This document shows, one piece after another, positions 12,950 to 53,709 of a stretch of DNA of 64,000 nt. Source of the stretch: Paragordius varius (taxonomy: Eukaryota; Animalia; Nematomorpha); NCBI GenBank assembly GCA_964247055.1, contig OZ176055.1:558001-622000 (forward strand), given 5' to 3'. The notes below the pieces were generated by a model. That model was not told where the DNA came from. It made no database searches and worked only from the letters and a program-made list of their open reading frames with translations. The stretch's first letter is position 1, and each line of letters opens with the position of its first letter. Both the position numbers and the translations under genes were made by a program.

Positions 12950-13061
12950 AGCGGTAAGCGCGAACGCAAACCGCCAACACCCATAAATTATGCGCTTAAC
13001 GTACCACAATTTGGAGTAGTTATAGCTATCAACTAGGATATCTCCCTTCTTAATCGGAGAA
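12950..13061 (-). pseudogene. U1: U1b snRNA 3' remnant with a 30-nt deletion of upper stem-loop II
   Basis: TTCTCCGATTAAGAAGGGAGATATCCTAGTT|GATAGCTATA...GCATAATTTATGG...GCGTTCGCGCTTACCGC. It lacks AAAGGCTAACCATTGCACTTCGGTTTTGCT, which is present at 48307-48336. Confidence 0.9.
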
Positions 13062-13295
13062 ATTTTAATTTATTAAAAAAGGGTATTATAAATATATTAT
13101 AAACAATTGCTAAAGAAAATGCAAAGGTATTGTGTAAATTAAATAATAAGGGAAAGAAGACCAAGCGTGAGTGGGAGATTGCAAAGAAAACATATAACAA
13201 AATTTGTTGTAGTATAAATGCTGAATGTTTTAATAAATAATATATAATGAAATATAAAGAGTAACAGTGTGGATGAAATGTGAGGTTTGATAGAT

Positions 13296-15642
13296 TTAAT
13301 TTTGATTTGAGCAAGCAGGCTGGTCATTGAGAGGGTCGACTAAGGGGGTAGTGCTTGGCGGTTGGATGTTCCGACCACTGATGAATAGGTGGTAGATATC
13401 ACAGGAGGATTTGAGCACTTCTGCGATGAGGTCCTGCTTGATACGGTTGGGGTATTTTATACCGAGTGCATCGAAGAGTTTGTCATTTCGGGGGTACCAG
13501 GAGCCTAGAGCTCCTATCACCACTGGGATAATTTCAACGTTGGAATATTTTTCAGAGAGGGAGCAAATTACCATTTTGATCCCTTTATTTTTTAGGGGGA
13601 TCGTATTTTGTTAGCTTGGTGTTAAAAGCATCGTCTAAAGATGATATTCTGTTTTCATAAGGGATTGTGGGGTCAATAATGTAACAATTGGTATTATCAA
13701 TTATCACTAGGTCGGGACGAAGGTTTGATTCATCAACCTTTTGATTTTCGGAGATAATCGAGAATTTTTTGGGTAGTATTGATTTAATGTAGTCAACCAC
13801 TCTGTTGTGACGCTCAGTTACAATACCTGTGTCTAACAGGCAGTGGTTGATTACATGAGACCCGGATTCGATCCGGTTCTTGCACCTTCTGCAAGATGTG
13901 TCGTCAAACCTTTCCGGTTTGCTATTAAGAGGAAGGTTGAGTCTGGCCCTATAGATAGATCTCCAATCCTTAAACCTCAGGTTTTTGCCTGAGAATAAGG
14001 AGTGTGAAGATTTATCCAAGGCGACACATTCCATTATCCTACCTTGGTTTGCAATTTGGTGGAAATTCAGGTCCTTCTCACCTCTTATTGCATTCCGGAA
14101 AAGATTGACGAGGGAATTTTTTAGATCAGGAACTATCAGTTTATGATGCAACTGAATGGCAAAGGAAGAGTCACCCAGGAGGACCCAGGTCGCACCCAGT
14201 GAAATTGAGGACTTGCGAGCAAGAGACCATACATTAGCGTAATTGGTATAGCCATTCGCCTCCTATTCCTTGCCGGAGAGATATTTGCATAATTGGTCAT
14301 GAGATGGTGATGTGGTGAGTCTGCACCTTTTTTTAACTGTAGAATTGAGTTCGTCCTGGGCTTTTTTGACCATGGGGTCATTAGTCTGAAGCAGTTTAAA
14401 AGCTGCATCGATAATGAAGATGTTGAAATCACTTTTTAGCTGCTGAATACCTAGGGCTCCCTTACTCCTCGATGCAAAGATATAGTTGTTAGTAGCATTT
14501 GGGAGCCCTAGTATTGGTTTCAGTATGCGCATCATTTCCGTGTCTAATTTATCACTTGTGGCGTAATTGAACTGATTCAAACGAAGGTAATAAGTTAAAG
14601 TTGGATAGTAAAAGCTTTTGATTGCGTCTAATTTTTGCCATGGGGCAAGAATTGATTTGGCAATTTTGTCAGCTAGTTCAATGTCTGGGAGAGGAATAGT
14701 AGGGAACAACCCTATTGGATTTCCCAGGTATTTTATGGTTTGATGGACCCCACGATTGGGGATCCTTGTATCATTTATCAAAAAAGAGGAATTGCTGTTG
14801 ACGTTGATGTTTGAGCATTTTTCAGGATTGACATTATGATGCATCAGATTCAGTTCGTTAACAATAAAGTTGATGTTGCTTTGATGTTCACTTTCATTGC
14901 GGGATATGCATATGATGTCATCAGCATATGCATACAGATCAATCCCCCTATTGGAGGCCCGCTTCATGATCTCATTCAAACCGATTATAAACAAGAGCCC
15001 TGAGATGGGGCTACCTTGTTTGATGCCCCTGTTTAGATTAATCGGAGAAAGGACCTCATTACCGGCACGTTGGATGTTTTGGCCAGTGAGAAGGAGGTTA
15101 CAATGAGGGATATTATGCCATTCGAAACACCAACCCTTTTAAGGTTGTTTAATATGATTGAGTGCGGCATTTTATCAAACGCATATGTTAATGCATGTGA
15201 CATGAGCTTGTTTTTTCTTCTTTTTAGAGAGATCAAGTTTAGATTTTATCATGTAATTCAGCTCAAAGCACCCGTCATAAGGGAGGAAGCCCTTTTGATG
15301 GGGAGCTAGTAAATGGTTTGTTATGAGATGTTGAGTGATTTTGTTCGAAACTAGTGCAGCGAAAAGCCTTTATAGGCAACTGGTTAGATCGATGGGTCGC
15401 CAGTTTTTTAAATTGTCTTTAGCACCATGCTTATGGATTAAAATGGTGGTGGAGTGGTTCCAAGAAGAGGGAATCTTTCTGTGCTGTAAACAGAGATTAA
15501 ATAGTTTGGTTAGAATGATTGCTTTTGGATCTTTGTTTTTTAAGTCTCTGTAACTGATACCATCAGGCCCGGCTGAGGTGTTTTCCATTTTCTTTAGTTT
15601 ATCGGAAACTTCCGTGCAGTTGAATGAGATCTCCGGCATCAT
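13296..15642 (-). pseudogene. RT-CCHC-RLE part of the element ORF, fragmented by frameshifts
   Basis: ORF-track fragments 15370-15642, 14263-14994, 13585-14151 and 13296-13574 are colinear with the 411-aa RT ORF at 51004. Confidence 0.9.
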
Positions 15643-16209
15643 TGGTGGGGAAACAGGATCATCATTAATGAGAGGTGCTGAGAGGTTATTGTTGTAAAGG
15701 GTTTGAAAGTGTTCTTCTATCTCGGTAATCGGGGCCGTGCAGCAGGCGGGTGGACCTTGGATAATTAGCCGGATGGCTCTTCTTCTGTTTAAACGATATA
15801 TTATTTGAATGTATTTAGGGTAGAGGTTAATTTGCTGGGGAGGGTTTGAGATTTTAGATTGGTTGGCTGTTTGTTGTATTGGATGAAAGAAGTCATTAAG
15901 TTCTAATACGAATGCATCTACTTCTTCCCAGTTATCAGCTTAGATTACAGTAAGTTTTTGAAGGAGGGAGGATAAATTTAATTGCTCAGGTGGTGAGTGA
16001 TTTGGATTAGCTAAGGGTGAGCTTGGTCGTCAGTTGGTAATATCTATAGGGTTTAGATTGGGCTTTTTGGTAGGATTGATGGTGGATTGGTTTACAACCT
16101 TTTTCCTCTTACACAAGGGTTTGGAGGTTGGTGCAGAATTATCAACCTCAATGTTCCAGTTTTAGGAGGTAGTGGCAGACTCAGACTCGATCGAAGTCAG
16201 GATGTTGAA

Positions 16210-17202
16210 TCAATTGCTTAGATCAATGTGTGGTGTACAAGGATTATAGAAATCAGACTCGAAAAGGTCATGATCTGAATCCTCGTTATTATTATTGTTA
16301 TTAGTGATGCGGTGCATAAGATTAGAATGGAATTTCAGATTAAGTAATGATTTAGTTTTGATAATTGGATTACGTGGTGGATCATGAAATCTTTCGTGCT
16401 TACGTAGGCTTGAGACTCTTTGGAAGGATAGGGAGCATTTAGAGCATTTTTTAAAAAAACTTTTTAACGGTATAGGGTTGTCCCAGTGGGGGCAGGATGG
16501 CAGTTGTGAGCTAGGGGTTGTCCCAATGTCCACATTGCAAGGATAGCATCTGTGAGCGACTGTAGGGGTACAATTTTGCTTATCCTTCAGGTGTCTGAGC
16601 AGGGACAGCTTCTGTGATGTCCAGATTGAGCAGCGGCTAGACATCAAGCAATCATCGTAAGGGCAAACAAAGTGGTTTGCCAACGGAAAAAAGAGGGTGA
16701 GAACATTATTTACTAAAGTAGGCTGTTTGCCAAAAGCCGGGTTCACAGTTGTGGTGTATTTTTGTTGTTGCCGAGTGTGAGAGATGGCAGCGTGTGTTGG
16801 AGCGGGATTAGACTTCTCATTAATGTTTGGTATGTTCAGACACTCATTAGTGAGATCTTGGCAGGGTGGATTATCAAAAAAGACTGCAGCAGCTTCAAAA
16901 CCAGGTCTACTTATTGTTGATGAAGTGGTACAGATTGGAGATGATGTAGATGAGGCGATTGTGTTGATAACTGGACTAGAATATATCGAAGTTAAGTTGA
17001 GTGTTAAAAGATATGATGATAAGGAAGATGTAATCTGACTGTGAGACGGTAGAGTGTTATGGATAACATGTGTGATGGAGAAAGAGCTAGAGGCAGCAGT
17101 TGAACTTGACGCGTGGCATGGTAAACTGGGAAAGTGTTCCTCATCAATTATTAATCTAGGAGTATCTTCATAAAATGGTTCAATTTCATATGTGTTCTGC
17201 AT
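16210..17202 (-). CDS. N-terminal region of the retrotransposon protein (330 aa open), with three zinc fingers
   Basis: CPYDDC...LLRHLKDK(Q here, H in copy 2); CYPC...(Q)LPSC, a CCHC-like finger with the expected His replaced; CSKC...LRKHERFH, a classic C2H2. The same frame continues to the RT through four stop codons. Confidence 0.8.
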   Translation of the reverse strand: MQNTYEIEPFYEDTPRLIIDEEHFPSLPCHASSSTAASSSFSITHVIHNTLPSHSQITSSLSSYLLTLNLTSIYSSPVINTIASSTSSPICTTSSTISRPGFEAAAVFFDNPPCQDLTNECLNIPNINEKSNPAPTHAAISHTRQQQKYTTTVNPAFGKQPTLVNNVLTLFFPLANHFVCPYDDCLMSSRCSIWTSQKLSLLRHLKDKQNCTPTVAHRCYPCNVDIGTTPSSQLPSCPHWDNPIPLKSFFKKCSKCSLSFQRVSSLRKHERFHDPPRNPIIKTKSLLNLKFHSNLMHRITNNNNNNEDSDHDLFESDFYNPCTPHIDLSN

Positions 17203-17402
17203 GGAAAGATAAGAGAATAAATGTTAATGGATAGAATCAATAAAGATAAGATATTTATAGATAAGAATGAGTATAAGAAAAGTGAATGCAGAATCTAATA
17301 ATAAGCGAAAAAAAACAGGATATGGTAAGGTTAAATTAATAAAGATTAATAAATGCAGTGAAAAAAGTCAGATAAAATTTGGACAGAGTTTCGCCGTGCA
17401 AC

Positions 17403-17424
17403 AAATCCTGCGCCAAGTAAGTAC
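17403..17424 (-). pseudogene. U1: U1b snRNA 5' end (nt 1-22) at the element 5' junction
   Basis: Reverse complement GTACTTACTTGGCGCAGGATTT matches intact U1b at 48254 except nt 1. The upstream spacer is homologous to the one upstream of 48254. Confidence 0.92.
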
Positions 17425-21900: not shown

Positions 21901-22751
21901 GGAACGTTTGACGATACATCTTGCAGAAGATGCAAGAACCTGATCAAATCCAGATCTCATGTGATAAACCACTGCCTGTTAGACACAGGTATTGTCACTG
22001 AGCACCACAACAGAGTAATTGATTACATTAAATCCATCCTACCCAAAAAATTCACCGTTATATCGGAAAATCAAAGAGTTGGTGATTTTAATCTACGACC
22101 TGATCTAATTATAACCGACAATACTAACTGTTACATTATCGATCCCACAATCCCATATGAAAACAAAATCTCCTCATTAGAGGACGCGTTTAACAATAAA
22201 CTTACCAAATATGATCATTTAATCGGCAACCTCTCTAAAAGGTACCCTAATATTGAAATAATTCCAGTAGTTATAGGAGCCCTAGGCTCGTGGTACCCGT
22301 CCAACGATAAACTCTTTGACGCCCTTAAAATTAAATATTTCACCCGTTTTTATCAAGAACTCATCGCAGAAGTTCTCAAAGCCTCCTGCGACATCTATCT
22401 GTTCATCAGTGGCAGAAACGTTCAACCTCAACCTGAAATTCCCATAGTTGGCTCAGCTGTCATCCCGCCTCTGTGTTCATGCCAAAATTAGTTCCTGCAA
22501 TCTCCATTTTCATCCCCCCGTGTTATATTTTATTTCATTACATATTTATTTATTCAAACACTCAGCATTTTTATTTGAACAAAATTATGTGATATATTTC
22601 CTTTGCAATCTCCCATTCACGCTTTTTCTTCTTTTCCTTATTATGAATAGTTGTTTATATATGTATATATAAAATTGTACACTAATAGTATTATTTTCTA
22701 TTACAGCAAATGCATTTAAAATATTTATATTATTTATTTAATAAATTGTAA
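18954..22751 (+). mobile_element. U1a-inserted RLE retrotransposon, alpha-type 3'UTR, 5'-truncated by about 450 nt
   Basis: ZnF fragments at 19162-19658, RT fragments at 20554-21496 and a 238-aa CCHC-RLE ORF at 21775-22491. The 3'UTR ends TAATAAATTGTAA directly before U1a nt 22. Confidence 0.95.
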
Positions 22752-22892
22752 CCATCGCGATCTAGAAGGCGATACCCTTAGTTTGAGACTTGGCCATTGC
22801 ACCTCGGCCAAGTTGAAGGCTACGATTGCTCCAAATGGGGGCAAGCCGAGCGCATAATTTCTGGCTGCCGGGTTCTGCGTACGCGCAGAACC
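22752..22892 (+). pseudogene. U1: U1a snRNA nt 22-162 after the insertion
   Basis: CCATCGCGATCTAGAAGGCGAT...CCATTGCACCTCGG...GCATAATTTCTGG...GGTTCTGCGTACGCGCAGAACC; nearly identical to intact U1a. Confidence 0.95.
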
Positions 22893-24139
22893 TATTATAT
22901 GCAAGAATAATTTAGTTTTAGCACTTGGATACAACACACTCATTTTAGTCCTTCGATTCAAATTGGCGTGGTTGAATACGCCAGGCCTGTCTAAAGTTAA
23001 ATTCTTTAAAAAATATGGAAGGAATCGAAATCATTTTGCACTTATATAACATTAAAAAACCGCATTGTATAAAAAATTTCATGGAGACATTATCACCACA
23101 ACCACTTGCCCACTATTTTATTATTTTTTTAAATCGTGTTCCCAAAAGTTTTAAATTTGGCAAAATATTTTTTACAATATATTATGTTATCGCCCTATAC
23201 AACCCCAAAACGAAATGAAGTATATGCGACTAGGAATAATTTCAATAAAGCGATTTTAAATATAAATAAATATCTTAAATCCATTTCTAATATTATGCAA
23301 TAAATATGTATTATATTGCATATTAAGCAAGCATTATCAAAAAAGCCAAATATTTTAATTGTTTTTACTAAAAAAAAGCACCAACAACTTTACTGCTTTT
23401 TAATAAAGTATGGGCAAATTTTAGAAATGTATAAATTTAAATCCTTAAAATTTAGATGAAGAAACAATTTTTGAAGGAAGAGATGATTATATTTTGGCTA
23501 AAGTTTTGTTAAATACTCTTTTTTACAATTTTGAAGCGCTGGTACACACACTTCAATATACATGGGTTTATAAAGTAAAAAGCACAATAATAAAGTGTTT
23601 AATATTAGCTGATAATCTAAGCTTCCTTGTTAAGGTTATGGGATAACTTATGTAATCATAAATAAATAATTATTTAATGTATGGAGAAATATAATAAATT
23701 GAAATAAAAACAAGATGCGCAACATAGGTATAGAATAAAAAATACATTGCGCTAAACTAATAAAATTAATATTTCAGAAAAAATTACTTATGGTATATAA
23801 AAATCAATTTTCGTAAAAAATATAAGTTATATTGAAAATATTATAAAAAAAACAAGATTACAATGTTTTTTAAGAATAAATTTGTAAATATTTTAATTTA
23901 AAATATATTGATTACTGTATATTCCAATGTCAATAACGATTTTGGTGAAACAAGTGGTAACAAACATGCATAGTCAACTAAAAATTATTTGTGTTATCTT
24001 TAAAGGCCTATTATGTTATCTATAATTTTTTATGGGTAATTACTTATCCGCATAGCTTTAGGAAGATTTGTAAAAATTCGGAGTTGGAGGGAAATAAGTA
24101 TAGACATATGGTGAATTAGCACGGCTAAAATAAAATTAA

Positions 24140-27188: not shown

Positions 27189-27293
27189 ATTATGCGCTCG
27201 GCTTGCCCCAATTTGGGGCAATCATAGCCTTCAACTTGGCCGAGGTGCAATGGCCAAGGCAAACTAAGGGTATCGCCTTCTTGATCGCGATGG
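27189..27293 (-). pseudogene. U1: U1a remnant from nt 22, stem-loop IV lost
   Basis: Reverse complement CCATCGCGATCAAGAAGGCGAT...CCATTGCACCTCGG...GCGCATAAT, then flank sequence. Confidence 0.92.
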
Positions 27294-27425
27294 TTACAAT
27301 TTATTAAATAAGTAATATAAGAATTTAAATACATTCTGTAAAAGAAAAGGCATAAATAGGATTTACTTATGAATAATATAGGATATATAATACGTAGCAA
27401 AGTTAATACTCATTGTGAATTTTAA

Positions 27426-27430
<5 letters not shown>

Positions 27431-27492
<62 letters not shown>
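27431..27492. repeat. (TA)n microsatellite, about 31 units
   Basis: Perfect TA run inside the element 3'UTR; the copy at about 22655 has only a short tatatatgtatata. Confidence 0.95.
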
Positions 27493-27494
<2 letters not shown>

Positions 27495-27603
27495 TTAATA
27501 ATATGGGAATGAAGACAAAGCGTGAATGGGAGATTGCAAAGAAAACAAACCACATATTTTCTTGTAATATAAATGTTGAGTGTTTGATTAAATAAATATG
27601 TAA

Positions 27604-28320
27604 TCTATATATTTATAAAAATGGAAAATGCTAGCTTTGTGATCTGGTACAGGAAAACCGGTAGACCCAATCAAATCCAAATATCGAAAAAATATAATCA
27701 TTAATGAATGTCCCGACAATAGCTTCGCCCTTTTTTTGAAATAGGCCCCCAGTTCGGGCCCACCCCGTATGAAAAACGGTTTTTTTTTAAAACAGAAGTC
27801 CACAAAATCGTGTTTTTGAGACAATTTTCCGGAGAACGTGTTGGACCATTAATTTCAAATATGATTTTTGTTTACTTATTTTCGATTGCGCCGAATATAG
27901 TCGAGTCACTTTTTTGATTTAGGCCCTCTTTTTACCCGCTCCCCCCGTAAAATGCCATTTTTTTTCAAAAAAAAACAAAGTCCACAAAAATATTTTTTTG
28001 ATTGTATTTTTTTGCCCAAGGTATGAGACTGTAAAAATTCGAGAAGATTTTTCGTAATGCCTGTTAAAAGGCAAAAATTTTAGTCAGGCGTTTCTTTGAT
28101 GATAGCTGCTGAGTAAGTATCTATCATATGTATAGCATGTTAAAAGATATATGGATATTAAAACATTATTTATGGTAATCTATTTATTTATAAAAATGGA
28201 AAATGCTGGCTTTGTGATCTACAGGGAAAACGGTAGACCCATTCAAATCCAAACTTCGAACCCCCCCCAGAAGTCCGAAGGACTTCCTCGGGCTGCGTAA
28301 CAGCACGAGATTCACGCTAG
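27604..28320 (+). mobile_element. Non-autonomous Helitron (717 bp) with a duplicated 5' terminus
   Basis: A|TCTATATATTTATAAAAATGG ... hairpin CTCGGGCTGCGTAACAGCACGAG, 6-nt spacer, CTAG|T. Inserted between A and T with no TSD. A second TC-start copy of the first ~80 nt begins at 28179. Confidence 0.85.
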
Positions 28321-29104
28321 TAAAATATAAAGAGTAACACAGGGGGATGAAAAGGGAGATCGCAAAAATTTATTTTGGCTTGAACACGGACACTGGTTGT
28401 CGTGTGAGGCAATTACGGAAGTATCAGGTTTAGGTTGAACGTTTCGTCCACTGATGAACAGATGATAGATGTCGCAGGAAGATTTGAGAACTTCCGCGAT
28501 GAGTTATTGTTTGAATCGGGTGGGATATTTTATTTTAAGTGCGCCAAAAAGCTTGTCGTTTGGTAATACCAATAGCCTAAGGCTCCTATAACTACAGGTA
28601 TTATTTCAACATTCGGGTACGTTTTAGAGAGTGTGCAGATTAAATGATCATATTTAGTAAGCTTATTGTTATATGCGTCGAGGAGATTGAGTTCTCGTAT
28701 GGGATTGTCGGATCGATGATGTAGCAGTTGGTATTGTCGGTTATTATTAGATCAGGTCGTAAATTAGATTCACCAACGTTTTGATTTTCGGTTATAACAG
28801 CGAATTTTTCGGGTAAAATGAATTCGATGTTATCGACTACTTTGTTGTGTCGCTCGGTGATAATACCTGTGTCTATCATACAGTAATTGACCACATGAGA
28901 TCCAGATTCAATCCGGCTCTTGCACCTTCAGCAAGAGGTATCGTCGAATCTTCCCGGTTTGCTGTTAAGAGGGAGAAAGTTGAGTATGGCCCTATGAATA
29001 AATCTCATATACTTAAACCTCAGGTTTTTGCCCGAGAATAATAAGGAATGTGAAGAAAGGCGACACATTCCATTATCCTCCCTTGGTTTGCAAGGTGGTG
29101 AGTA

Positions 29105-30589
29105 ATAAATTAGCAGATAAAATTGCTAAATCAAACCTTGCCCCATGGCAAAAGTTAGACGCAATCAAAAGCTTCTATTACCCAAATTTAACGTATACCT
29201 CCGGTTAAATCAATTTAATTTCGCCACCAGCGACAAACTAGATACACAGATGTTGAGTGTCCTAAAACCAATGCTGGGGCTTCCAAAAGATGCTATAACA
29301 ACCATATCTTTGCATCGGGAACAAGGGAGCCCTAGGCATCCGCAGCTAAAAGGTGATTTCATCATCTTTAGAATAATGCAGCCTTCAAAAAGATTCATCG
29401 AATGACCCAATGGTCAAAAATTATGAATAAGATTAGCTCAATTCAACAGTTAAAAAAGGTATAGACTCACCTCAACCCCATCTCATGATCAAATTATGCA
29501 AATTCCTTTCCGACAGGGAAGATGATGCGAATTACCACATCAATTACGCGCAAATCAATTCACTTGCTGCCACCTGGATCCCCCAAAGCGACTCTTTCGC
29601 CATTCAGTTCCGCCAAAGTCTAATAGCCCTGGATTTGAAAAATTCCTTTCACCTGTCCCGGAATGCAATAAGAGGTGAGAAGGATCTGAATATCCATCAC
29701 CTTGTAAACGAAGGGAGGATAATTCAATGTGTCGCATGGATAAATCCTCCCGTTTTTTCGTATTCTAGGCAAAAACCTGAGGTTTAAGGATTGGAGATTT
29801 ATTTCAAGGGCCGAACTCAACCTGCTCCCACCTAACTAACCGGGAGGGTTCATCGATATCTCTTGCAGAAGGTGCAAGAATCGGATTGAATCAGGATTTT
29901 ATGTAATAAATCACTGCCCCATATGTTATATCTGGAAATCAAAATGTTGATGACTCAAACTTACGACCTGATATACTAATAACTGATAACGCTAACTGCT
30001 ACATAACAGACCCGACGATCCCCTATAAATACATTTTTTCATTAGACGACGCATTTAACACCAAGCTCACTAAATATGATAACCTGATCTGCTCCTTCTC
30101 TGAAAAAAACGCAATGTTGAAATCATACCTGTAGAAAAGCCCTAGGCTCATGGTACCCCCAAATGACAAACTTTTTGACGCACTTGGAATAAAACACCCA
30201 CCCGTTTTAAACAAAAGCTCATCACGTAAGTGCTCAAATCTGCCTGTGACATCTACCGTTTGTTCATCAGTGGTCTGAACGTTCAACCTCTATCTGATGC
30301 TTCCGTAATTGCCTTTCCCGTCAACCAACCTCCTGCCCAAGCCAAAATTAGTTTTATGCAAACTCCCATTCACACCTTTTCTCCATCTTATTTTACATAT
30401 ATTTTTATTCTCACAAAATTAATTCCGTATACCGTTATATCCTTTTTTTACATTATCATACAAATATCATTTGTAGTAAAGCAATAGATGTGATTTTTAT
30501 TTCCATTTATACATATATATTCATTCCCCTCTTCTTCTTTTACAGCAATTTTTATTGATATGTTCATATAATATTCTTTAATATTTTAT
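29105..30589 (+). mobile_element. U1b-inserted gamma-type element, 5'-truncated and decayed
   Basis: PWQKL, LGLPKDA and RLE remnants; the 3'UTR is joined to U1b nt 22. Confidence 0.88.
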
Positions 30590-30725
30590 TTTCTCCGATC
30601 AAGAAGAGAGATACCTAGTTAAAAGCTAACTATTGCACTTCGGTTTTGCTGATAGCTATAACTACTCCAAATTTGTTAAACGCATAATTTATGGGTTTTG
30701 GCGGTTTACGTTCGCGCTTACCGCC
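30590..30725 (+). pseudogene. U1: U1b 3' remnant from nt 22
   Basis: TTTCTCCGATCAAGAAG...CTATTGCACTTCGG...GCATAATTTATGG...CGTTCGCGCTTACCGCC. Confidence 0.92.
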
Positions 30726-30764
30726 TTATATCCAATAAGGTAAAATTTACTTTTTTTAAAAAAC

Positions 30765-39926: not shown

Positions 39927-40051
39927 AGAACCCGGCAGCCAGAAATTATGCGCTCGGCTTGCCCCCATTTGGGGCAATCGTAGCCTTCAACTTGGCCGAG
40001 GTGCAATGACCAAGTCTCAAACTAAGGGTATCGCCTTCTTGATCGCGATGG
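39927..40051 (-). pseudogene. U1: U1a remnant from nt 22, SL4 half deleted
   Basis: Reverse complement CCATCGCGATCAAGAAGG...GCATAATTTCTGGCTGCCGGGTTCT. Confidence 0.93.
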
Positions 40052-41079
40052 TTACAATTTATTAAATAAATAATATAAATATTTTAAATACATTGCTGTA
40101 AAAGAAAATGCAAAGGTAGGAATTAATAGATAATATAGAATTTATAAATAGTAACACGGGGGGATGAAAATGGAGATTGCAGGAACTAATTTTGGCCTGA
40201 ACAGAAAGGCGGGATGACGGCTGAGGCAACTACGGGAAATTCAGGTTGAGGTTGAACGTTTCTGCCACTGATGAACAGATGGTAGATGTCGCAGGAGGCT
40301 TTGAGAACTTTTGCGATGAGTTCTTGTTTAAAACAGGTGGGATATTTGATTTTAAGTGTGTCAAAGAGTTTATCGTTGGGCGGGTACCACGAGCCTAGGG
40401 CTCCTATAACTACAGGAATTATTTCAACATTTGGGTTCGTTTTAGAGAGATTTCAGATTAAATGATCATATTTAGTAACTTTATTGTTATATGCGTCCTC
40501 TAATGAGGAGATTCTGTTTTTATATGGGATTGTAGGATCGATAATGTAACAGTTGGTATTGTCGGTTATAATTAGATCAAGTCGTAGATTAGAATCACCA
40601 ATTCTTTGATTTTCCGATATAACGGTGAATTTTTGGGGTAATATTGATTTAATGTAATCTACAACTTTGTTATGACGCTGAGTAACAATGCCTGTGTCTA
40701 ACAGGCAGTGGTTAATTACATGGGACGCGGATTCAATTCGATTCTTGCATCTTCTGCAAGTAGTATCGTCGAACCTTCCCGGTTTGCTGTTAAGAGGGAG
40801 AAGGTTAAGTCTGGCCCTTTGAATAAATCTCCAGTCCTTAAACCTCCGGTTTTTGCACAAGAATAAAAAGGATTGGGAAGATTTATCCAAGGCTACACAT
40901 TCCATTATCCTTCCTTGGTTTGCAAGTTGGTGGAAATTCAGGTCCTTCTCACCTCTTATTGCATTCCGGAAAAGGTGGACGAAGGAATTTTTTATGTCCG
41001 GGACTATTAGACGTTCATGAAATTGAATGACGGAAGAGTCACCTAGCGGGACCCAGGTCGCACCCAGTGAGATTGAAGA
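40052..41079 (-). mobile_element. U1a-inserted alpha-type element, 5'-truncated (~1 kb)
   Basis: 150-aa CCHC-RLE ORF at 40453-40905; 3' end TAATAAATTGTAA at U1 nt 22. Confidence 0.92.
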
Positions 41080-42701
41080 ATCAAATTCACTTAGATGTTA
41101 ATCCTGCAAAATGCTCAAATATTAATGTCAACAGCGAGTGTACTTTTTTGATAAACGAAATAAAAATTCCTAATTGTGAGGCCACCAAACCATAAAATAT
41201 CTGGGAACAATAGGGTTATTCCTTACCATTCCCATTCCAGATATTAAATTAGCTGATAAAATTGCTAAATCTAACCCTGCCCCTTAATTAAACGCAATCA
41301 AAAACTTACCCAACTTTAACGTATTACCTACGATTAAATCAATTTAACTTCTTGCATCGAGGAATAAGGGAGCCCTTGGAATCCTGCAGCTAAAAACGAT
41401 TTTAACATTTTTAGAATTGATCCACTCTTTAAATTGATTCATTCAAATGACCCAATGGTCAAAAAATATGCTCAGGAAGAGCTTAACGCAAGAGTCAAAA
41501 AAGATATAGTACCTCTACCACATCTCATGATTAAATATGCAACTACCTTTCCGGCAAGGAAGATGATGCGAGCGGCCATATTAATTACGTGAACGTATGG
41601 TCACTTGCTCGCAAATCTTCAATCTCGCTTGCCGCGACTTGGGTCCCCCTAGGTGAATCTAGCCATTCAGTTCCGTCAAAGTCTAATAGTCCCAGATTTA
41701 AAAAATTTCCTTGTTCACCTGTTTCAGAATACTAAGAGATGAGAAGCTGAATTTCTACCACCGTGCAAACCAAGGGATGATATTGGAATTTTTGCCTTGG
41801 ATAAATCTTTCCGTTTCTTCTTATTCTCAGGCAAAAACCTAAGATTTAAGGATTGAAGATTATTTATAGGGCTAGACTCAACCTTCTCCTTCTTAACTGC
41901 AGACCGGGAAGGTTCGACGATACCTCTTGCAGAAGGTGCGAAATTCGGATTGATGGGTCCCATGTAATTAATCACTGCCTGATAGAAACAGGGTTTGTTA
42001 CTCAACGTCATAACAAGTTGTAGAGTATATTAAATCAATATTACCCAAAGAATTCACTGTTATATCCGAAAATCAAAAAGTTGGTGAATCAAATTTACGA
42101 CCTGATTTAATAAGAACCGACAATACCAACTGCTACCTAATAGACCCGACAATTCCCTACGAGAACATAGTCTCCTCAATACAGGACGCATTTAACAATT
42201 GGCTTTCTAAGTCTGATCTTTTAATCTGCACCCTCACTGGAAAGTACTCGAATGTTCAAATCATACCTGTAGTTATAGGAGCCCTAGGTTCGTGACCCCC
42301 AAATGGAACAAAATACCCCACCCGTTTCAAACAAGAACTCATCGCGGAAGTTCTCAAATCTTCCTGCGACATCTACCATCTGTTAATCAGTGGTCGGAAC
42401 GTTCAACCTCTATCTAACTTCCGTATTTGCCTCACCCGTCAAACAACCTCGGTACCGTTAGTCCTATGCAATCTCCCAATCACTCAGTTTCTTCAGCTCA
42501 TTTTTTTAATATATATTTTATTCTCACAAATATAATTAATTCCATATACCGTTATATCCTTTTTTTACTTTATACAAATGTCATTTTTAGTAAAGCAATA
42601 GATGTGATTTTATTTCCATTTATTCATATATATTCATTCCCTTTTCTTTTACAGCAATGTTTATTAATATGTTCATATTATATTTTTTAATAAATTATAA
42701 T
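41080..42701 (+). mobile_element. U1b-inserted gamma-type element, 5'-truncated and decayed
   Basis: KYLG to RLE remnants; the 3'UTR matches 30350-30589 and 57130-57400. Confidence 0.88.
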
Positions 42702-42844
42702 TTTCTTTGATCAAGAAGGGAGATATCCTAGTTAAAATTTAACCATTGCACTTCGGTTTTGCTGATAGCTCTAACTACTCCAAATTGGGGTACGTTAACC
42801 GCATAATTTATGGGTTTTAACAGTTTGCGTTCGCGCTTACTACC
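42702..42844 (+). pseudogene. U1: U1b 3' remnant from nt 22
   Basis: GATCAAGAAGGGAGATATCC, CCATTGCACTTCGG, GCATAATTTATGG and GCGTTCGCGC are all present. Confidence 0.93.
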
Positions 42845-46530: not shown

Positions 46531-46680
46531 ATTTAATAAAGTAAGCTTTGGCCTCAGACCAAATATAACAGCAGAATACGAACTTCATATTTATTATTTT
46601 CAGTTAATATTTAATCATTAACTAAGTAAACACATTACTAATATGTATATTGTTAAACTAAATTAATTTTGTATGTAAAA

Positions 46681-46842
46681 GGTTCTGCGCGTACGCAGAA
46701 CCCGGCAGCCAGAAATTATGCGCTCGGCTTGCCCCCATTTGGGGCAATCGTAGCCTTCAACTTGGCCGAGGTGCAATGGCCAAGTCTCAAACTAAGGGTA
46801 TCGCCTTCTTGATCGCGATGGGCCCTCGCGCCAGGTAAGTGC
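46681..46842 (-). ncRNA. U1: U1 spliceosomal snRNA, isoform a, uninterrupted (162 nt)
   Basis: (GC)ACTTACCTGG 5'ss-recognition end, SL1 loop GATCAAGAAG with ATCGC/GCGAT stem, SL2 loop ATTGCAC, helix H GCGC/GCGC, Sm site ATAATTTCTGG and a perfect SL4 hairpin. The first two nt read GC rather than AT. Confidence 0.95.
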
Positions 46843-46879
46843 TTATACGATAAACGTTGTTTTGATATAAATTTTTTTC

Positions 46880-46900
46880 TTAACCGAAAGTTGGGTATCA
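46880..46900 (-). promoter_or_regulatory. Possible PSEA-like snRNA promoter element
   Basis: TGATACCCAACTTTCGGTTAA at about -58 to -38 resembles the insect PSEA (TAATTCCCAACT...). It is poorly conserved in the paralogous spacer. Confidence 0.35.
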
Positions 46901-47780
46901 AATATAATATCTCATATTAGATTCTATCTAAATGCGATGTAATCCATAAGAAATTGACCTTTACCAAATGGACTATTATAATCAAGATGCACAATTCCAG
47001 GGAGACTGGATGATTTCCAATATTCAATGCATAAAGTAGATATAGAGGGCGTTTATATTTACTATATTTAAAATGCGTCAATATTACATTCGTTACACAT
47101 ATATAATTTGTGTTTAGTATGTTACATTTTATATTACATTAGGAATGTATATATACATACAAAAAAATGGTCTTAAATTAAAAAATTTCCTCAATCCATC
47201 AATATTTTGTGTTCAAAATATAATGTTATCTTTTAGAAAGGATTTTTTATAACATAAAATGTGTACATTATTAAATAAACAAAAATAATGTTTGGCAATA
47301 GTAAAATTGTCGTACTTTAAGCATTTTTTTTGTTTTTAACCATACTATCCTGTAAAATTATACTGTATAAGTTATCCCTCTATTTTTTACCTTAATTGTT
47401 TACATAGTTACTTTTTTTCACGTGCGTTTGAATTTATTTTATTAAGGAAAGGTGCAATAACATATCATTGTCTATATAATTTTTATTTTTTATACATTTG
47501 AAAATAATTTTTTATAAATACTAGCAAGTATCAATTTGTGTGTAAAATAATAACTATAGAAAGAAAGATTTTTTTATGAGAAAATAATTACAGTAACATT
47601 GCGGTTTTTATTTACTAAAAAGAATAATTACATATTTGTATAAAAAAATCTTATGTGCAACAAAAACATGTGTTAAATAGAAATGGCCCATTTTACAAAT
47701 GTTTAAATACCAACAACTTTAAATTGATTATATACATGTATTATTTATAAGGGTATAATATAAACCAACGTAAAATATTA

Positions 47781-47942
47781 CAGTAGCTTATGGCATAAAA
47801 CAATTTTAGTCCATAAAAAAATAAAAATTGTTTTTTTAAAAACAAGGGGATTTTATGGATAATGTCCATATACAACTCGGGTTGTTTTTATTAAAAAAAT
47901 TATCTATTATGGGCCAATAATGTTTTATGCTATTCGCTACTG
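47781..47942. mobile_element. Short TA|CAGTAG-type MITE
   Basis: TACAGTAGCTTATGGCATAAAACA vs the reverse complement TGCAGTAGCGAATAGCATAAAACA; it sits at the spacer position equivalent to 17667-18118. Confidence 0.55.
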
Positions 47943-48253
47943 CATTTTTAAATCGGTATCCCAGACTTTTTGAAATGTATAACTTTGTAATGCCATATAT
48001 ATGAAAATTCGTGATGTTAAAAAACATAACATGTACATATACGCCCTCTTTTCATATTAAACTTTCATAATATTGAAATTTACATTGAAATTTGATTCAA
48101 TACAAATATTTTTTTAAGTCTATCATAAAGTACTTTTGCGATATCAAATGTTATATTAATGATATTTTTTTCTAATTGTTACTCATTTTCAAACGGCACA
48201 CCCTTTTCAAGCATGTTAACAAATTTATATAAATACAGGCAAAAATGGTTAAA

Positions 48254-48417
48254 ATACTTACTTGGCGCAGGATTTTTCTCCGATCAAGAAGGGAGATATC
48301 CTAGTTAAAGGCTAACCATTGCACTTCGGTTTTGCTGATAGCTATAACTACTCCAAATTGGGGTACGTTAAGCGCATAATTTATGGGTGTTGGCGGTTTG
48401 CGTTCGCGCTTACCGCC
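48254..48417 (+). ncRNA. U1: U1 spliceosomal snRNA, variant isoform b, uninterrupted (164 nt), C9U
   Basis: ATACTTACTTGGCGC; SL1 TCTCC-GATCAAGAAG-GGAGA; SL2 loop ATTGCAC; Sm site ATAATTTATGG; SL4 GGCGG...GCGTTCGCGC...CCGCC. Confidence 0.95.
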
Positions 48418-48454
48418 TTATTATTTGTATGGTAAAATTTAGTTTTTTTTAAAA

Positions 48455-50634
48455 ATTTATTTTTTCTAAAGCACGGATGTTGATTTTTGGGGAGAGTACT
48501 ATGGAGGTTTTTATTCAGATGCTAGATATTCCGAACATTTATGAAAAGGTGGTAGATATCGCAGGAAATTTTGAGCACTTCCACGATGAGTTCTTGTTTG
48601 ATACGGTTGGGGTATTTTATACCGAATACATCAAATTTTGTCACTTCAAGGGACCATGAGCCTAGAGCTCCTATCACCACTGGGATAATTTCAACTTAGA
48701 ATATTTTGAAAAAAAGAGCAAATCAAATGATCGTATTTTGTAAGCATCTTCTGATGATACTCTATCATAAGGGATTGTGGGGTCGATAATGTAACAATTG
48801 GTATTATCAGTTATCACTAGGTCGGGACGCAGGTTTGAGTCATCAACCTTTTGATTTTCGGAGATGATCGAGAATTTTTTAGGTAGTATTGATTTATTGT
48901 AGTCAACCACTTTGTTGCGACGCTCGGTGACAATACCTGTGTCTAACAGGCATTGATTTATCACATGAGATCCGGATTCGATCCGGTTCTTGCACCTTCT
49001 GCAAGATGTACCGTCAAACCTTCCCGGTTTGCTATTAAGAGGGAGAAGGTTGAGTCTAGCCCTATGGATAAATCTTCAATCCTTAAACCTCAGGTTTTTG
49101 CCTGAGAATAAGAAGGAATGTGAAGATTTATCCAAGGCGACACATTCCATTATCCTACTTTGGTTTGCAAGGTGGTGGAAATTGATGTCCTTCTCACTTC
49201 TTATTGCATTCCGGAAAAGGTGGACGAGGGAATTTTTCATGTCTGGGACAATTAGACGTTCATGAAATTGAATAGCGAAGGAAGAGTCGCCTTGAGGGAC
49301 CCAGGTCGCACCCACTGAGATTGAGGACCTGCGAGCGAGTGACCATACGTTAGCGTAGTTGATATGGCCACTCGCCTCCTCTTCCTTGCCAGAGAGATAA
49401 TTACATATTTGGACATTGGATGGAGACGAGGTAAGTCTGTATCTTTTTTTTACTGTTGCCTTAAGTTCATCCTGAGCGTATTCTTTCACCATGGGGTCAT
49501 TTGAATGAATTAGTGTGAAAGCAGCGTCAATCCTGAATATGTTGAAATCAGTTTTTAGCTGCTGAATACCTAAGGCTTCCTTACTCCTGGATGCAAAGAT
49601 ATAGTTGTTTGTAGCATCTTTTTGGAGCCCTAGTATTGGTTTCAGTATGCTCATCATTTTCGTGTCTAATTTTTCGCTTGTAGCGTAGTTGAACTGATTT
49701 AGACGTAGGAAATAGGTTAATGTGGGGTAATAAAAACTTTTGATAGCATCTAATTTTTGCCAAGGAGCAAGATTAGATTTCGCTATTTTATCCGCAAGTT
49801 CAATATCTGGGAGGGGAATAGTAGGGAATAACCCTATTGGATTTCCCAGATATTTTATTGTTTGATGAACGCCACAATTGGGAATCCTTATATCATTTAT
49901 CAAGAAAAAGGAGTCACTGTTGACATTTATGTTTGAGCATTTAAGCGGGCTGACATCTAGAAGAATTTGCTTGAGTTCGTTGACTAGTCAATATTAAGTT
50001 GATGCTCTATTTTATTTTGGGATATGCATATGATGTCATCAGCATATGCATACAGCTCAATCCCTTTATTGGAGGCTCGCTTCATGATTTCATTCAATCC
50101 GATAATGAAAAGAAAACCTGAGAGGGGGCATCCTTGTTTGATGCCCCTGCCAAGTTTGACCGGAGCGGTAAACTCATTACCGGCGCGGATCGATGTGGTG
50201 GCCATTGATAACGAATTTGCGAGGAGGGAGATCGTGCCTTCCGATATACCCACCCTTTTCAGGTTGTGTAGAATGAACGGGTGTAGGATTTTATCGAAGG
50301 CATTGGCTATGTCTATGCAGGTGATATTTGCATGTTGTTTCTTTGCTTTAAAAGCATCAAGTTTAGATTTTATTATATAATTCAGCTCAAAGCACCCGTC
50401 ATAAGGGAGGAAGCCCTTTTGACGGGGAGCTAGAAGTTGATTTGAGACGAGATGCTTACTAATTTTATTGGCGACAAGTGCAGCGAATAGCCTATAAAGG
50501 CATCTAGTGAGGGCGATGGGTCGCCAATTTTTTAATGTGTTTTTGTCACCATGTTTGTGGATTAAAATGGTGGTTGAATGATTCCATGTGGTAGGGATCT
50601 TTTTGTGCAGTAAACATAAATTAAAAAGTTTGGT
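48455..50634 (-). mobile_element. Antisense element copy behind the intact U1b (RT to RLE, no 3'UTR)
   Basis: ORF fragments of 275, 89 and 96 aa; 49021-50634 is the near-perfect reverse complement of 51136-52745. Confidence 0.92.
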
Positions 50635-53532
50635 CTAGCTGATCCAAATAATTCTCTACCTGAACATTTAAACCTAACCTCCCTCCTCCAAAAACTCACT
50701 GAAATCCAAGCTGATAACTGGGAAGAAGTAGATGGACTATTATTAGAACTTGATAATTTCTTCCATCCATTACAACAAGCAGCCAACCATTCTAAAACCT
50801 CAAAATCTCCCCAGCAAATCAACCTATCCCCCAAATACATTTAAAAAATATATCGTTTCAACAGGAGAAGAGCCATCCGGCTAATTACCCAAGGTCCACC
50901 CGCCTACTGCACGGCCCCGATTACCGAGATAGAACATCACTTTCAAACACTTTACAACAGTAACCTCTCAGCACCTCTCATTAATGATCCTGTTTCCCCA
51001 CCAATGATGCCAGAGATCACATTCAATTGCACGGAAGTTTCCGATAAACTTAAGAAAATGGAAAACACCTCAGCCGGGCCTGATGGTATCAGCTTCAGAG
51101 ACATGAAAAATAAAGATCCCAAAGCGATCATATTAACCAAACTTTTTAATTTATGTTTACTGCACAAAAAGATCCCTACCTCATGGAATCATTCAACCAC
51201 CATTTTAATCCACAAACATGGTGACAAAAACACATTAAAAAATTGGCGACCCATCGCCCTCACTAGTTGCCTTTATAGGCTATTCGCTGCACTTGTCGCC
51301 AATAAAATTAGTAAGCACCTCGTCTCAAATCAACTTCTAGCTCCCCGTCAAAAGGGCTTCCTCCCTTATGACGGGTGCTTTGAGCTGAATTATATAATAA
51401 AATCTAAACTTGATGCTTTTAAAGCAAAGAAACAACATGCAAATATCACCTGCATAGACATAGCCAATGCCTTCGATAAAATCCCACACCCGATCATTCT
51501 ACACAACCTGAAAAGGGTGGGTATATCGGAAGGCACGATCTCCCTCCTCGCAAATTCGTTATCAATGGCCACCACATCGATCCGCGCCGGTAATGAGTTT
51601 ACCGCTCCGGTCAAACTTGGCAGGGGCATCAAACAAGGATGCCCCCTCTCAGGTTTTCTTTTCATTATCGGATTGAATGAAATCATGAAGCGAGCCTCCA
51701 ATAAAGGGATTGAGCTGTATGCATATGCTGATGACATCATATGCATATCCCAAAATAAAATAGAGCATCAACTTAATATTGACTTCATAGTCAACGAACT
51801 CAAGCAAATTCTTCTAGATGTCAACCCGCTTAAATGCTCAAACATAAATGTCAACAGTGACTCCTTTTTCTTGATAAATGATATAAGGATTCCCAATTGT
51901 GGGGTTCATCAAACAATAAAATATCTGGGAAATCCAATAGGGTTATTCCCTACTATTCCCCTCCCAGATATTGAACTTGCGGATAAAATAGCGAAATCTA
52001 ATCTTGCTCCTTGGCAAAAATTAGATGCTATCAAAAGTTTTTATTACCCCACATTAACCTATTTCCTACGTCTAAATCAGTTCAACTACGCTACAAGCGA
52101 AAAATTAGACACGAAAATGATGAGCATACTGAAACCAATACTAGGGCTCCCAAAAGATGCTACAAACAACTATATCTTTGCATCCAGGAGTAAGGAAGCC
52201 TTAGGTATTCAGCAGCTAAAAAAACATATTCAGGATTGACGCTGCTTTCACACTAATTCATTCAAATGACCCCATGGTGAAAGAATACGCTCAGGATGAA
52301 CTTAAGGCAACAGTAAAAAAAAGATACAGACTTACCTCGTCTCCATCCAATGTCCAAATATGTAATTATCTCTCTGGCAAGGAAGAGGAGGCGAGTGGCC
52401 ATATCAACTACGCTAACGTATGGTCACTCGCTCGCAGGTCCTCAATCTCAGTGGGTGCGACCTGGGTCCCTCAAGGCGACTCTTCCTTCGCTATTCAATT
52501 TCATGAACGTCTAATTGTCCCAGACATGAAAAATTCCCTCGTCCACCTTTTCCGGAATGCAATAAGAAGTGAGAAGGACATCAATTTCCACCACCTTGCA
52601 AACCAAAGTAGGATAATGGAATGTGTCGCCTTGGATAAATCTTCACATTCCTTCTTATTCTCAGGCAAAAACCTGAGGTTTAAGGATTGAAGATTTATCC
52701 ATAGGGCTAGACTCAACCTTCTCCCTCTTAATAGCAAACCGGGAATGCAGGAATCGAATTGAATCCGGCTCCCATGTGATAAACCACTGCCTGTTAGACA
52801 CAGGTATTGTGACCGAGCGTCACAACAAAGTGGTTGATTACATTAAATCAGTACTCCCCAAAAAATTCTCGATTATATCCGAAAATCAAAAGGTTGATGA
52901 ATCGAACCTTCGTCCCGACCTAGTGATAACTGACAACACCAATTGCCACATTATAGACCCCACAATCCCTTATGTAAATAGATTATCATCTTTAGACGAT
53001 GCATTTAATACCAAGCTAACAAAGTACGATCACCTAATTTGTTCCCTCTCCGAAAAATATTCCAACGTTGAAATTATTCCAGTGGTGATAGGAGCTCCAG
53101 GCTCCTGGTACCCCCGAAATGACAAACTCTTCGATGCACTCGGTATAAAATACCCCAACCGTATCAAGCAATATCTCATCGCAGAGGTGCTCAAATCCTC
53201 CTGTGATATCTACCACCTATTCATCAGTGGTCGGAACATCCAACCGCCAAGTGTGACCCCCATAGTCAACCCCCCTATCGACCTGCCTCCTTGCTCAAGT
53301 CAAAATTAAATCTATCCAACTTTGCATTTCATCCCCATTGTTATTTATATTTTATTACTTATTATTTATTAAAACAATCAGCATTTATATTACTACAAAT
53401 ATGTGATGTTTTCTTTGCAATCTCCCATTCACGCGTTGTCTCCTTTAATATTTAATTTACACAATACCTTTGCATTTTCTTTTACAGCAATTGTTTATAA
53501 TATATTTAAAATACCTTTTTAATAAATTAAAA
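50635..53532 (+). mobile_element. U1b-inserted beta-type element, 5'-truncated, least decayed copy
   Basis: 411-aa RT ORF plus 138-aa and 177-aa downstream ORFs; the 3'UTR ends TTTTTAATAAATTAAAA before U1b nt 22. Confidence 0.95.
51004..52239 (+). CDS. Reverse transcriptase domain of the RLE non-LTR retrotransposon (411 aa open; frameshifted at about 52220)
   Basis: GPDG, NWRPIALTSCLYRLF, QKGF, DIANAFDKIPH, GIKQGCPLS, YADD and KYLG motifs. Confidence 0.92.
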   Translation: MMPEITFNCTEVSDKLKKMENTSAGPDGISFRDMKNKDPKAIILTKLFNLCLLHKKIPTSWNHSTTILIHKHGDKNTLKNWRPIALTSCLYRLFAALVANKISKHLVSNQLLAPRQKGFLPYDGCFELNYIIKSKLDAFKAKKQHANITCIDIANAFDKIPHPIILHNLKRVGISEGTISLLANSLSMATTSIRAGNEFTAPVKLGRGIKQGCPLSGFLFIIGLNEIMKRASNKGIELYAYADDIICISQNKIEHQLNIDFIVNELKQILLDVNPLKCSNINVNSDSFFLINDIRIPNCGVHQTIKYLGNPIGLFPTIPLPDIELADKIAKSNLAPWQKLDAIKSFYYPTLTYFLRLNQFNYATSEKLDTKMMSILKPILGLPKDATNNYIFASRSKEALGIQQLKKHIQD

Positions 53533-53675
53533 TTTCTCCGATCAAGAAGGGAGATATCCTAGTTAAATACTAACCATTGCACTTCGGTTTTGCTGATAGC
53601 TATAACTACTCCAAATTGGGGTACGTTAAGCGCATAATTTATGGGTGTTGGCGGTTTGCGTTCGCGCTTACCGCC
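53533..53675 (+). pseudogene. U1: U1b nt 22-164 after the insertion
   Basis: Nearly identical to 48275-48417. Confidence 0.95.
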
Positions 53676-53709
53676 TTATTATTTGTATGGTAAAATTTAG
53701 TTTTTTTTA

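Follow-up and report, generated by a model that had tools for sequence, protein, structure and literature searches.

Utopia elements are non-LTR retrotransposons of the NeSL clade that carry a restriction-like endonuclease (RLE) and target U2 snRNA genes (Kojima & Jurka 2015, PMC4640811). NeSL itself has been proposed to have branched off Utopia via a target change (PMC4640811), and this sets a precedent for the U2-to-U1 switch proposed below. Other target-specific non-LTR elements of small-RNA genes include NeSL-1, distinguished from the element described here by its Ulp1 protease and spliced-leader target, and the U2-specific Keno of the Tx1 group, which differs in its APE endonuclease. U1 snRNA genes are the specific target of the zebrafish DNA transposons Dada-U1A and Dada-U1B (PMC3706591, PMC8869645), yet these encode a transposase and leave 6-7-bp target-site duplications, and their protein and mechanism are unrelated to an element with a reverse transcriptase (RT) plus RLE, a 1-nt duplication, 5′ truncated copies and an A-rich tail. 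Dada transposons were the only U1-specific mobile elements found in open-access papers and preprints, and no U1-targeting non-LTR element was found there. Finally, in R2 elements of the A-clade, high-affinity site binding is achieved by ZF1 plus a Myb domain, and a co-folded ZF3-2 pair lies on upstream DNA and is dispensable for target-primed reverse transcription (TPRT) (PMC11204384); the Myb domain has been described as a hallmark of R2 as opposed to Utopia (PMC13188248).

Within the 64,000-nucleotide stretch of the Paragordius varius genome analysed here (the window), a 4,340-bp RLE-bearing non-LTR retrotransposon occupies positions 13063-17402 on the minus strand, where it lies in the same orientation as the U1b snRNA gene that it interrupts between nt 21 and 22. 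Its features, from upstream to downstream, are as follows.

Beyond 17424: upstream U1 promoter region, from sequence context.
17403..17424, minus strand: U1b snRNA nt 1-22, the 5′ target fragment (identical to U1b nt 2-22 at 21/21 positions; contigs bridge 17402/17403).
17203..17402, minus strand: element 5′ UTR.
13296..17202, minus strand: decayed single ORF of ~1,295 codons (38% identity to the intact 1,280-aa protein of element L001 over 1,221 aligned positions).
16360..16746, minus strand: N-terminal three-zinc-finger module of long C2H2-like, CCHC and classical C2H2 fingers (alignment; HMM matches in U2-targeting relatives).
14700..15600, minus strand, approximate bounds: reverse transcriptase domain (the largest piece matches Pfam RVT_1 at E=9.6e-17; alignment).
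13600..13899, minus strand: C-terminal CCHC finger and PD-(D/E)xK restriction-like endonuclease (aligned by phmmer with the solved R2 protein 9nl3_A at E=2.7e-9).
13063..13295, minus strand: 3′ UTR with terminus AATAAATTAAAA.
12951..13062, minus strand: U1b snRNA 3′ fragment, nt 22-53 and 83-163, with nt 54-82 missing.

The 5′ junction (17403/17402) passes from ...GCAGGATTT into GTTGCACGG, and the 3′ junction (13063/13062) from ..AATAAATTAAAA into TTTCTCCG. An intact U1b gene (48254-48419) has five T residues at the site, as compared to three plus three in the split copy, giving a target duplication of 1 nt (T). The 5′ junction is bridged without mismatch by contigs from two independent sequencing studies (X3 record 15 and X6 record 23) and is therefore no assembly artefact. 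Both junctions thus stand as a first-pass annotation of this DNA had placed them, on the basis of sequence match, the intact U1b comparison and, for the 5′ junction, the bridging contigs. Its proposal that removing the element restores U1b, with at most a 1-nt duplication, needs correction: the duplication is indeed a single T, but the host gene carries a 29-nt internal deletion (nt 54-82) and no working gene would result. Other U1b copies run through the deleted segment, as seen from loose ends at 13031 in other sequencing runs. The first 13-14 nt of the 5′ UTR are found in this copy alone and are followed by a ~32-nt block (CTCTGYCCAAATTTTATYTGA..) common to this copy and the intact U1 element L001; at the other end, the terminal motif AATAAATT of the 3′ UTR also occurs in U2-targeting relatives. 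The element ends in an A-rich tail. An Rfam search of the element at E<=1 returned the U1 fragment only, neither an HDV-like ribozyme nor an R2 3′ UTR element being detected, and across the window Rfam found no rRNA and a tRNA scan no tRNA genes.

The encoded protein proceeds from the C2H2-like, CCHC and C2H2 fingers through a conserved pre-RT motif to the RT (YADD), a CCHC finger and the RLE, which together carry the motifs CRRC..H..C, RHN, RPD, IIDPT and K..KY. By alignment and Pfam each of these domains can still be recognised in this decayed copy, and L001 has them intact, in agreement with the layout and the size of about 1300 codons first proposed; the pre-RT motif, earlier read as QKIY..., is actually QIIYRLNRRRAIRLI. 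The absence of Ulp1 was likewise borne out, as Pfam detects no PF02902 in the window pieces, L001 or L004 (a U2-targeting relative), and distant database relatives with PF02902 branch outside. No Myb domain matched in the window pieces or L001 at E<=0.1 in Pfam, which can miss divergent Myb domains. The three-finger module retains nine invariant ligand columns in the alignment with relatives, and the region between finger 3 and the RT is poorly conserved (19-23% identity). In structural comparisons of an AF2 model of the L001 module (pLDDT 89.5), the best matches were to A-clade R2, in its N-terminal fingers. The co-folded fingers at the N-terminus of turtle R2 can be overlaid on predicted fingers 1-2 with Z 4.8 over 67 residues at 3.5 A, the next unrelated match being at Z 2.5.

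This copy is dead, as judged from nine in-frame stops (16210, 16162, 16030, 15940, 15370, 15175, 15172, 15139 and 14263), at least one frameshift (near 13580-13603) and two lost zinc ligands of fingers 1 and 2, both mutated to Gln. A compensated frameshift pair is also probable around 15040-15245, and the RT retains YADD with a corrupted motif A region. The window copy is a full-length, long-dead, single-ORF non-LTR retrotransposon, a fossil whose value lies in its two preserved junctions. It is the sole copy of its family to keep both.

The insertion site recurs. All nine 5′-truncated U1 fragments in the window directly follow an element 3′ end (AATAAATT..) and start at nt 21-22, or a few nucleotides inward where eroded, which excludes chance. 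More U1 junctions lie just beyond the window and 3.1 Mb distant, and a second family, represented by L001 with its intact 1,280-aa ORF and ~40% protein identity, occupies the identical U1 position. Genome-wide, 4 full-length U1 genes stand against 13 partial ones. No U2 flank was found for the window family. A few copies are located outside U1, namely L025 and a group (L033-L035) arising from one event that was later duplicated; specificity is therefore strong rather than absolute. Given the recurrence of the site and its use by a second family, U1 snRNA genes are a real insertion target, between nt 21 and 22.

Several of these properties are shared with Utopia. Elements of either kind carry a single ORF in which the RT lies between N-terminal zinc fingers, one to three in number, and a C-terminal CCHC finger with the RLE. 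Their target is in each case a low-copy spliceosomal snRNA gene, which they enter in its own orientation, leaving a 3′ junction that is precise and a 5′ junction that varies; disrupted target genes outnumber intact ones, and a single genome harbors several diverged families. They differ in position, U1 nt 21/22, which lies immediately upstream of stem-loop I, as opposed to U2 nt ~39-42. The nearest RT relatives of the window family are U2-inserted elements. We built trees with FastTree on 107 rows and, more carefully, by maximum likelihood in IQ-TREE on 43 rows across the RT-to-RLE region. In the latter, the 17 elements sampled from this genome, the window family among them, all fall into one clade (100/99), which is sister (100/100) to arthropod elements; 7/7 of the arthropod elements checked have U2 flanks at the canonical Utopia site. 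Most members of the 100/99 clade occupy U2 genes at nt 40-41 (U2-inserted relatives in this genome, at nt 40-42, are L003, L004, L016-L019, L032, L014 and L015), and the U1 families are nested among them. By these phylogenetic criteria the window family very probably belongs by descent to the Utopia lineage, with a U1 target derived from U2 in the lineage of this animal; Utopia membership here refers to the target site, architecture and taxa in PMC4640811, the tree being drawn without named Repbase Utopia sequences. The kinship and the change of snRNA proposed in the first-pass annotation, which had put forward an RT tree as its check, are thus upheld: the element does not fall outside the Utopia/NeSL group. 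A U2-to-U1 switch is supported, its direction being that favored by outgroup parsimony rather than by a rooted model test. Because the three-finger module is homologous throughout the compared elements, retargeting would have occurred within a conserved module and not by domain replacement.

The number and direction of switches are less certain. The ML tree of the RT-RLE region groups L001 (U1) with L004 (U2) at 96/89 to the exclusion of the window family, so that the U1 families are paraphyletic and two target changes are needed rather than one. On that tree two changes are equally required if the ancestor of the window family, L001 and L004 (clade B) already targeted U1 and L004 returned to U2, or if U1 targeting arose twice, and we regard this pair of scenarios as a serious, though not the favored, possibility. 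Against it, an AU test on the same data does not reject U1 monophyly (p=0.149), the two U1 families come together in the zinc-finger tree (94/85), and these families share the 5′ UTR block and an N-terminal extension that is 46% identical between them as compared to 17-20% to L004. The RT and zinc-finger trees conflict, and neither AU test rejects the alternative. The finger grouping, the extension and the 5′ UTR block fit a single U1 origin, together with recombination or a misleading RT node. Somewhat more speculatively, target choice could reside in a portable 5′ cassette (the 5′ UTR block, N-terminal extension and three-finger module) that is swapped between co-resident lineages by recombination, in which case the active L001 might be a natural chimera of a window-like, U1-reading front and an RT-RLE body nearest L004. 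If true, L001 would constitute a natural domain-swap experiment on the retargeting of an R2-like integrase. Recognition-helix residues, suggested at the outset for comparison with U2-targeting relatives, display no U1/U2 pattern for ZnF3 in the alignment and were rejected as a discriminator, since the two U1 families are as different from one another as they are from L004. It is worth noting that most aligned U2-targeting relatives have a G-L-x-N-H motif in the ZnF3 helix that is lost in clade B, and that finger 2 of clade B has an H-x3-C spacing unlike theirs.

It is highly improbable that the element instead stems from an R2-type lineage, or from some other RLE lineage, and came to snRNA genes by convergence. 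The closest proteins are named 'R2DM-like' in the database and the N-terminal fingers resemble ZnF3-2 of A-clade R2, with which the element also shares RT-RLE architecture and the CCHC/RHN/PD..D..K motifs. However, such names are automatic, and U2 rather than 28S flanks the proteins that bear them. Both flanks of the window element are U1 and not 28S. Moreover, sequence similarity to R2 is far lower (127-238 bits for solved R2 proteins as compared to 500-600 bits for U2-flanked relatives), Pfam detects no Myb, and Myb-bearing R2-like proteins form a separate clade.

Equally improbable is a single chance U1 insertion amplified afterwards by segmental duplication of the U1 array: although the locus is a repeated array, with arms at 48525-50634 and 51136-53240 that are 94% identical and one flank common to L033-L035, the nine U1 fragments represent two U1 variants that share only ~70% identity near the site, 5′ truncation points differ among copies, element copies are just 68-86% identical, the 40%-identity family at the same nucleotide has 100%-identical recent copies, and at least three junctions combine unrelated truncation points with divergent flanks.

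By analogy with R2, and in addition to the structure, junctions, site recurrence and phylogeny observed directly, a likely TPRT mechanism can be outlined. A transcript of the element would be made from inside the snRNA gene, and the N-terminal fingers of its protein would bind the target, making them the putative U1-reading domain. At U1 nt 21/22 the RLE would then nick the bottom strand and thereby provide the primer for reverse transcription of the element RNA, and cleavage of the top strand ~1 nt away would yield the 1-nt duplication. Tandem N-terminal fingers had been cited initially as established target readers in R2-type elements; this calls for some qualification, as in the A-clade it is ZF1 together with Myb that binds the site with high affinity, and TPRT does not need the ZF3-2 pair on upstream DNA (PMC11204384).

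These observations bring U1 genes into the range of niches known for non-LTR elements and would add a second documented target change inside the Utopia/NeSL group. R2-like site-specific RLE retrotransposons are under development as gene-insertion tools, for which changing specificity is an open practical question. Here, close relatives with the same three-finger architecture use two targets in one genome, U1 nt 21/22 and U2 nt ~40, and the intact members (L001 for U1; L004, L003 and L017 for U2) provide a compact natural comparison set for specificity determinants.

The window also contains head-to-head element pairs, which we considered as fold-back (hairpin) duplications. This reading was rejected since one pair alone has similar arms (94%); in the others the arms are 74-77% identical or without match. 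These other pairs therefore represent separate insertions.

In the window (G000:C6:558001-622000, from a 110.5-Mb, AT-rich eukaryotic assembly) Rfam recognises two intact U1 snRNA genes, U1a and U1b, and the reference copy, a dead RLE non-LTR retrotransposon, splits another copy of U1b:

46678-46842, minus strand: intact U1a gene (Rfam)
48254-48419, plus strand: intact U1b gene (Rfam)
17403-17424, minus strand: 5′ target fragment, U1b nt 1-22
17402 down to 13063, minus strand: the element, 4,340 bp
from 13062, minus strand: 3′ target fragment, U1b resuming at nt 22
16360-16746, minus strand: three-finger module, with a long C2H2-like finger after an F-P motif, then CCHC and classical C2H2 fingers

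The first-pass annotation had placed U1 at both junctions with at most a 1-nt duplication, and this is borne out: intact U1b carries five T at the insertion site versus three plus three in the split copy, and a single nucleotide was therefore duplicated. Removing the element had also been said to restore U1b, which proves incorrect, since this host copy lacks nt 54-82, a segment through which contigs from other runs continue in other U1b copies; excision would thus not regenerate a working gene. The 5′ junction is crossed without a single mismatch by contigs from two independent studies, which rules out an assembly artefact. The first 13-14 nt of the copy (GTTGCACGGCGAA, window 17389-17402) are not present at the 5′ end of L001, an intact second U1-targeting element of this genome, and include TTGCAC, as in the loop of U1 stem-loop II; they may represent extra bases gained at the 5′ junction or the product of a template switch.

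The reference copy is a fossil, and its worth lies in the survival of both junctions, of which it is the sole example among its relatives (the window family). Its coding region lies nearly all in one frame, from a Met at 17202 to 13588, and is interrupted by nine in-frame stops and by a frameshift near 13580-13603, before the last ~90 codons. Around 15040-15245 a different frame gives the better match to relatives, so a pair of mutually compensating frameshifts is probable there. Two zinc ligands, in fingers 1 and 2, are replaced by Gln, and RT motif A is corrupted. Nowhere in the genome was an intact window-family member found; the best of the remaining copies, at ~84% DNA identity, are broken too, and our comparisons used naturally intact relatives in place of a consensus or repaired ORF of the family.

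U1 targeting by the window family is real. All nine of the 5′-truncated U1 fragments in the window adjoin an element 3′ end (..TAATAAATT plus 3-4 nt), six starting exactly at U1 nt 21-22 and three, which are eroded, slightly later. These fragments represent two U1 variants that diverge strongly right at the site (GGGCC/CATCGCG versus GATTT/TTCTCCG) and have in common, further downstream, the stem-loop I loop GATCAAGAAGG. Additional U1 junctions are found in L036, just beyond the window, and in L002, 3.1 Mb away. Because the copies are truncated at different 5′ positions and share 68-86% identity with the reference, the junctions are not one insertion that was duplicated. Genome-wide, 13 U1 genes are partial versus 4 full-length, an excess that mirrors Utopia and its U2 target in Phytophthora and Nasonia (PMC4640811). 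Contigs C11 and C29 also carry window-family 3′ fragments of ~0.9 kb each at non-U1 sites:

L033:4239-5248, off-target 3′ fragment
L034:1884-2752, off-target 3′ fragment
L035:4392-5260, off-target 3′ fragment

A flank starting TCAACTTCAACC is common to L033 and L035, and the L034 fragment has alignment statistics identical to those of L035; because of the shared flank we read all three as probably a single off-target insertion, duplicated afterwards. Separately, the U1 3′ fragments at 22752-22893, 39927-40051, 53533-53677 and L036:4551-4680 match the intact genes at 98.6-100% identity, and the element copies adjoining them share only 72-86% identity among themselves and are full of stops. This points to gene conversion between U1 sequences, or else to repeated insertions of elements that had diverged beforehand.

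The domain order proposed earlier (three fingers, pre-RT motif, RT, CCHC, RLE) is upheld by the finger module, by Pfam RVT_1 (E=9.6e-17 for the largest piece) and by alignment of the C-terminus to the CCHC finger and RLE of a solved R2 protein, which covers the motifs CRRC..H..C, RHN, PD, D and K..KY. The pre-RT motif is indeed present and is kept in all relatives, its letters having been misread; the actual reading is QIIYRLNRRRAIRLI. Pfam detects no Ulp1 protease in the window-copy pieces, L001 or L004, in line with the earlier reading, and no Myb domain (E<=0.1) in those pieces or L001.

When the RT-RLE region of L001 served as query in a word-based protein search, external relatives at 34-38% identity came from spiders, a tick, crayfish, an aphid and metagenomic contigs. 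Matches at greater distance included Ulp1-bearing proteins, Trichinella among them, and, from an oomycete, a protein combining RNase H with RT; the same architectures and taxa are described for NeSL and Utopia. Flanking DNA was examined for seven of the closest matches: in P0001-P0005 and P0014 a terminal ..AATAAA.. runs into TCTGTTCTTATCAG, U2 sequence from nt ~41-42 onward, and for P0013 a U2 fragment lies upstream. Within this genome, no fewer than five further families or subfamilies (L003/L019, L004/L032/L014, L016, L017/L018 and L015) are inserted in U2 at nt 40-42 with the common terminus AATAAATT. This co-resident set is unusually rich, with at least four diverged U2-targeting Utopia families spread over several contigs (L003, L004, L016, L017, L018, L019 and L032) whose ORFs are open or nearly so (972-1,411 aa).

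An IQ-TREE analysis (43 rows, 842 columns, LG+C20+F+G4, with breaks in damaged copies read through as X) united 17 of 17 elements from this genome in one clade (100/99), sister to the arthropod U2-flanked clade (100/100). The element therefore does not fall outside Utopia/NeSL, the placement that the first-pass annotation had named as contradicting its proposed U2-to-U1 switch. Within this clade, clade A holds U2 elements only; in clade B (100/99) the two U1 families, that of the window (100/100) and that of L001, are joined by the U2-targeting L004 family. By outgroup parsimony the ancestral target would have been U2, and the window family is a U1-targeting offshoot of Utopia. The only U1-specific mobile elements in the literature searched (open-access papers and preprints, not exhaustive) were Dada-U1 DNA transposons, and no non-LTR element with that target was among them. 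Lists of target-specific non-LTR elements are not known to contain a U1-targeting member.

The second U1 family is represented by an intact element, ~40% identical in protein to the window copy, which occupies the identical position within another U1 gene copy or variant of this genome's U1 set as follows:

L001:3124-7388 (G000:C6:3725124-3729388), U1-targeting element with an intact 1,280-aa ORF at L001:3285-7124

Two 5′-truncated copies on other contigs (L025:3955-6790 and L026:3790-6406) match the L001 protein at 100% across their coding sequence, and the family has thus probably been active recently. The L025 copy is off-target. The L026 copy carries 10 nt of U1 (CCAATCGTGA) past its 3′ end at a non-U1 site, which suggests that the template RNA extends ~10 nt into U1 beyond the terminal AATAAA.

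The RT-RLE tree pairs L001 with L004 (96/89) and leaves the window family outside, and the three-finger tree pairs the two U1 families (94/85). On the three-finger data the L001 plus L004 grouping is not rejected (p=0.129).

Identity by region among the window family (U1), L001 (U1) and L004 (U2)
N-terminal extension: window/L001 46%, window/L004 17%, L001/L004 20%
RT: window/L001 36%, window/L004 34%, L001/L004 47%
Thumb/linker: window/L001 43%, window/L004 44%, L001/L004 54%

By these identities, and by a ~32-nt block that both U1 families have at the beginning of the 5′ UTR, the front of the element follows the target and the back a different history. U1 targeting may have arisen once, with L001 a recombinant or the RT node wrong, and U1-family monophyly is not rejected on the RT-RLE data (AU test, p=0.149); differences in constraint and rate could also imitate the conflict between front and back.

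Since Myb is undetected here, we infer that specificity must come from the three fingers, possibly aided by the N-terminal extension. AlphaFold2 predicts the L001 module with confidence (pLDDT 89.5), and the structures most similar to the model are N-terminal fingers of A-clade R2 proteins (Foldseek probability 0.96-0.99). The predicted likeness is modest (VIA-align against turtle R2 residues 1-69: Z 4.8, 67 residues, 3.5 A; next unrelated match Z 2.5), and is in line with a comment in the literature that the co-folded pair of fingers known from R2 lineage A also occurs in some Utopia proteins (PMC13188248). In A-clade R2, high-affinity site binding comes from ZF1 plus Myb, and ZF3-2 binds upstream DNA and affects second-strand nicking and 5′ junctions (PMC11204384). 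Comparison of residues between U1 and U2 families in the finger alignment yielded no simple recognition-helix code: canonical contact positions are occupied differently in the two U1 families, and the G-L-x-N-H motif of finger 3, kept in most aligned U2-targeting relatives, is lost throughout clade B, including the U2-targeting L004.

The U1 locus (27189-30727, 39927-42840 and 46678-48419) is apparently built of divergent U1a(-)/U1b(+) gene pairs. The intact pair has 1.4 kb between its 5′ ends; in two others the spacer is replaced by two head-to-head 5′-truncated elements, 8-16 bp apart, each continuing into its own U1 3′ fragment. The facing arms are 77% identical or do not match each other, and hence are separate insertions rather than fold-backs. 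In the window-family 3′ UTR, ~60 nt before the element end, a conserved polypyrimidine tract is followed by ACAG (TTTTCTTTTACAG; 13120-13140, 53470-53490, 22690-22710 and 40090-40110). L001 has a similar tract, TTTTTTTCAG, and the arrangement looks like a 3′ splice site.
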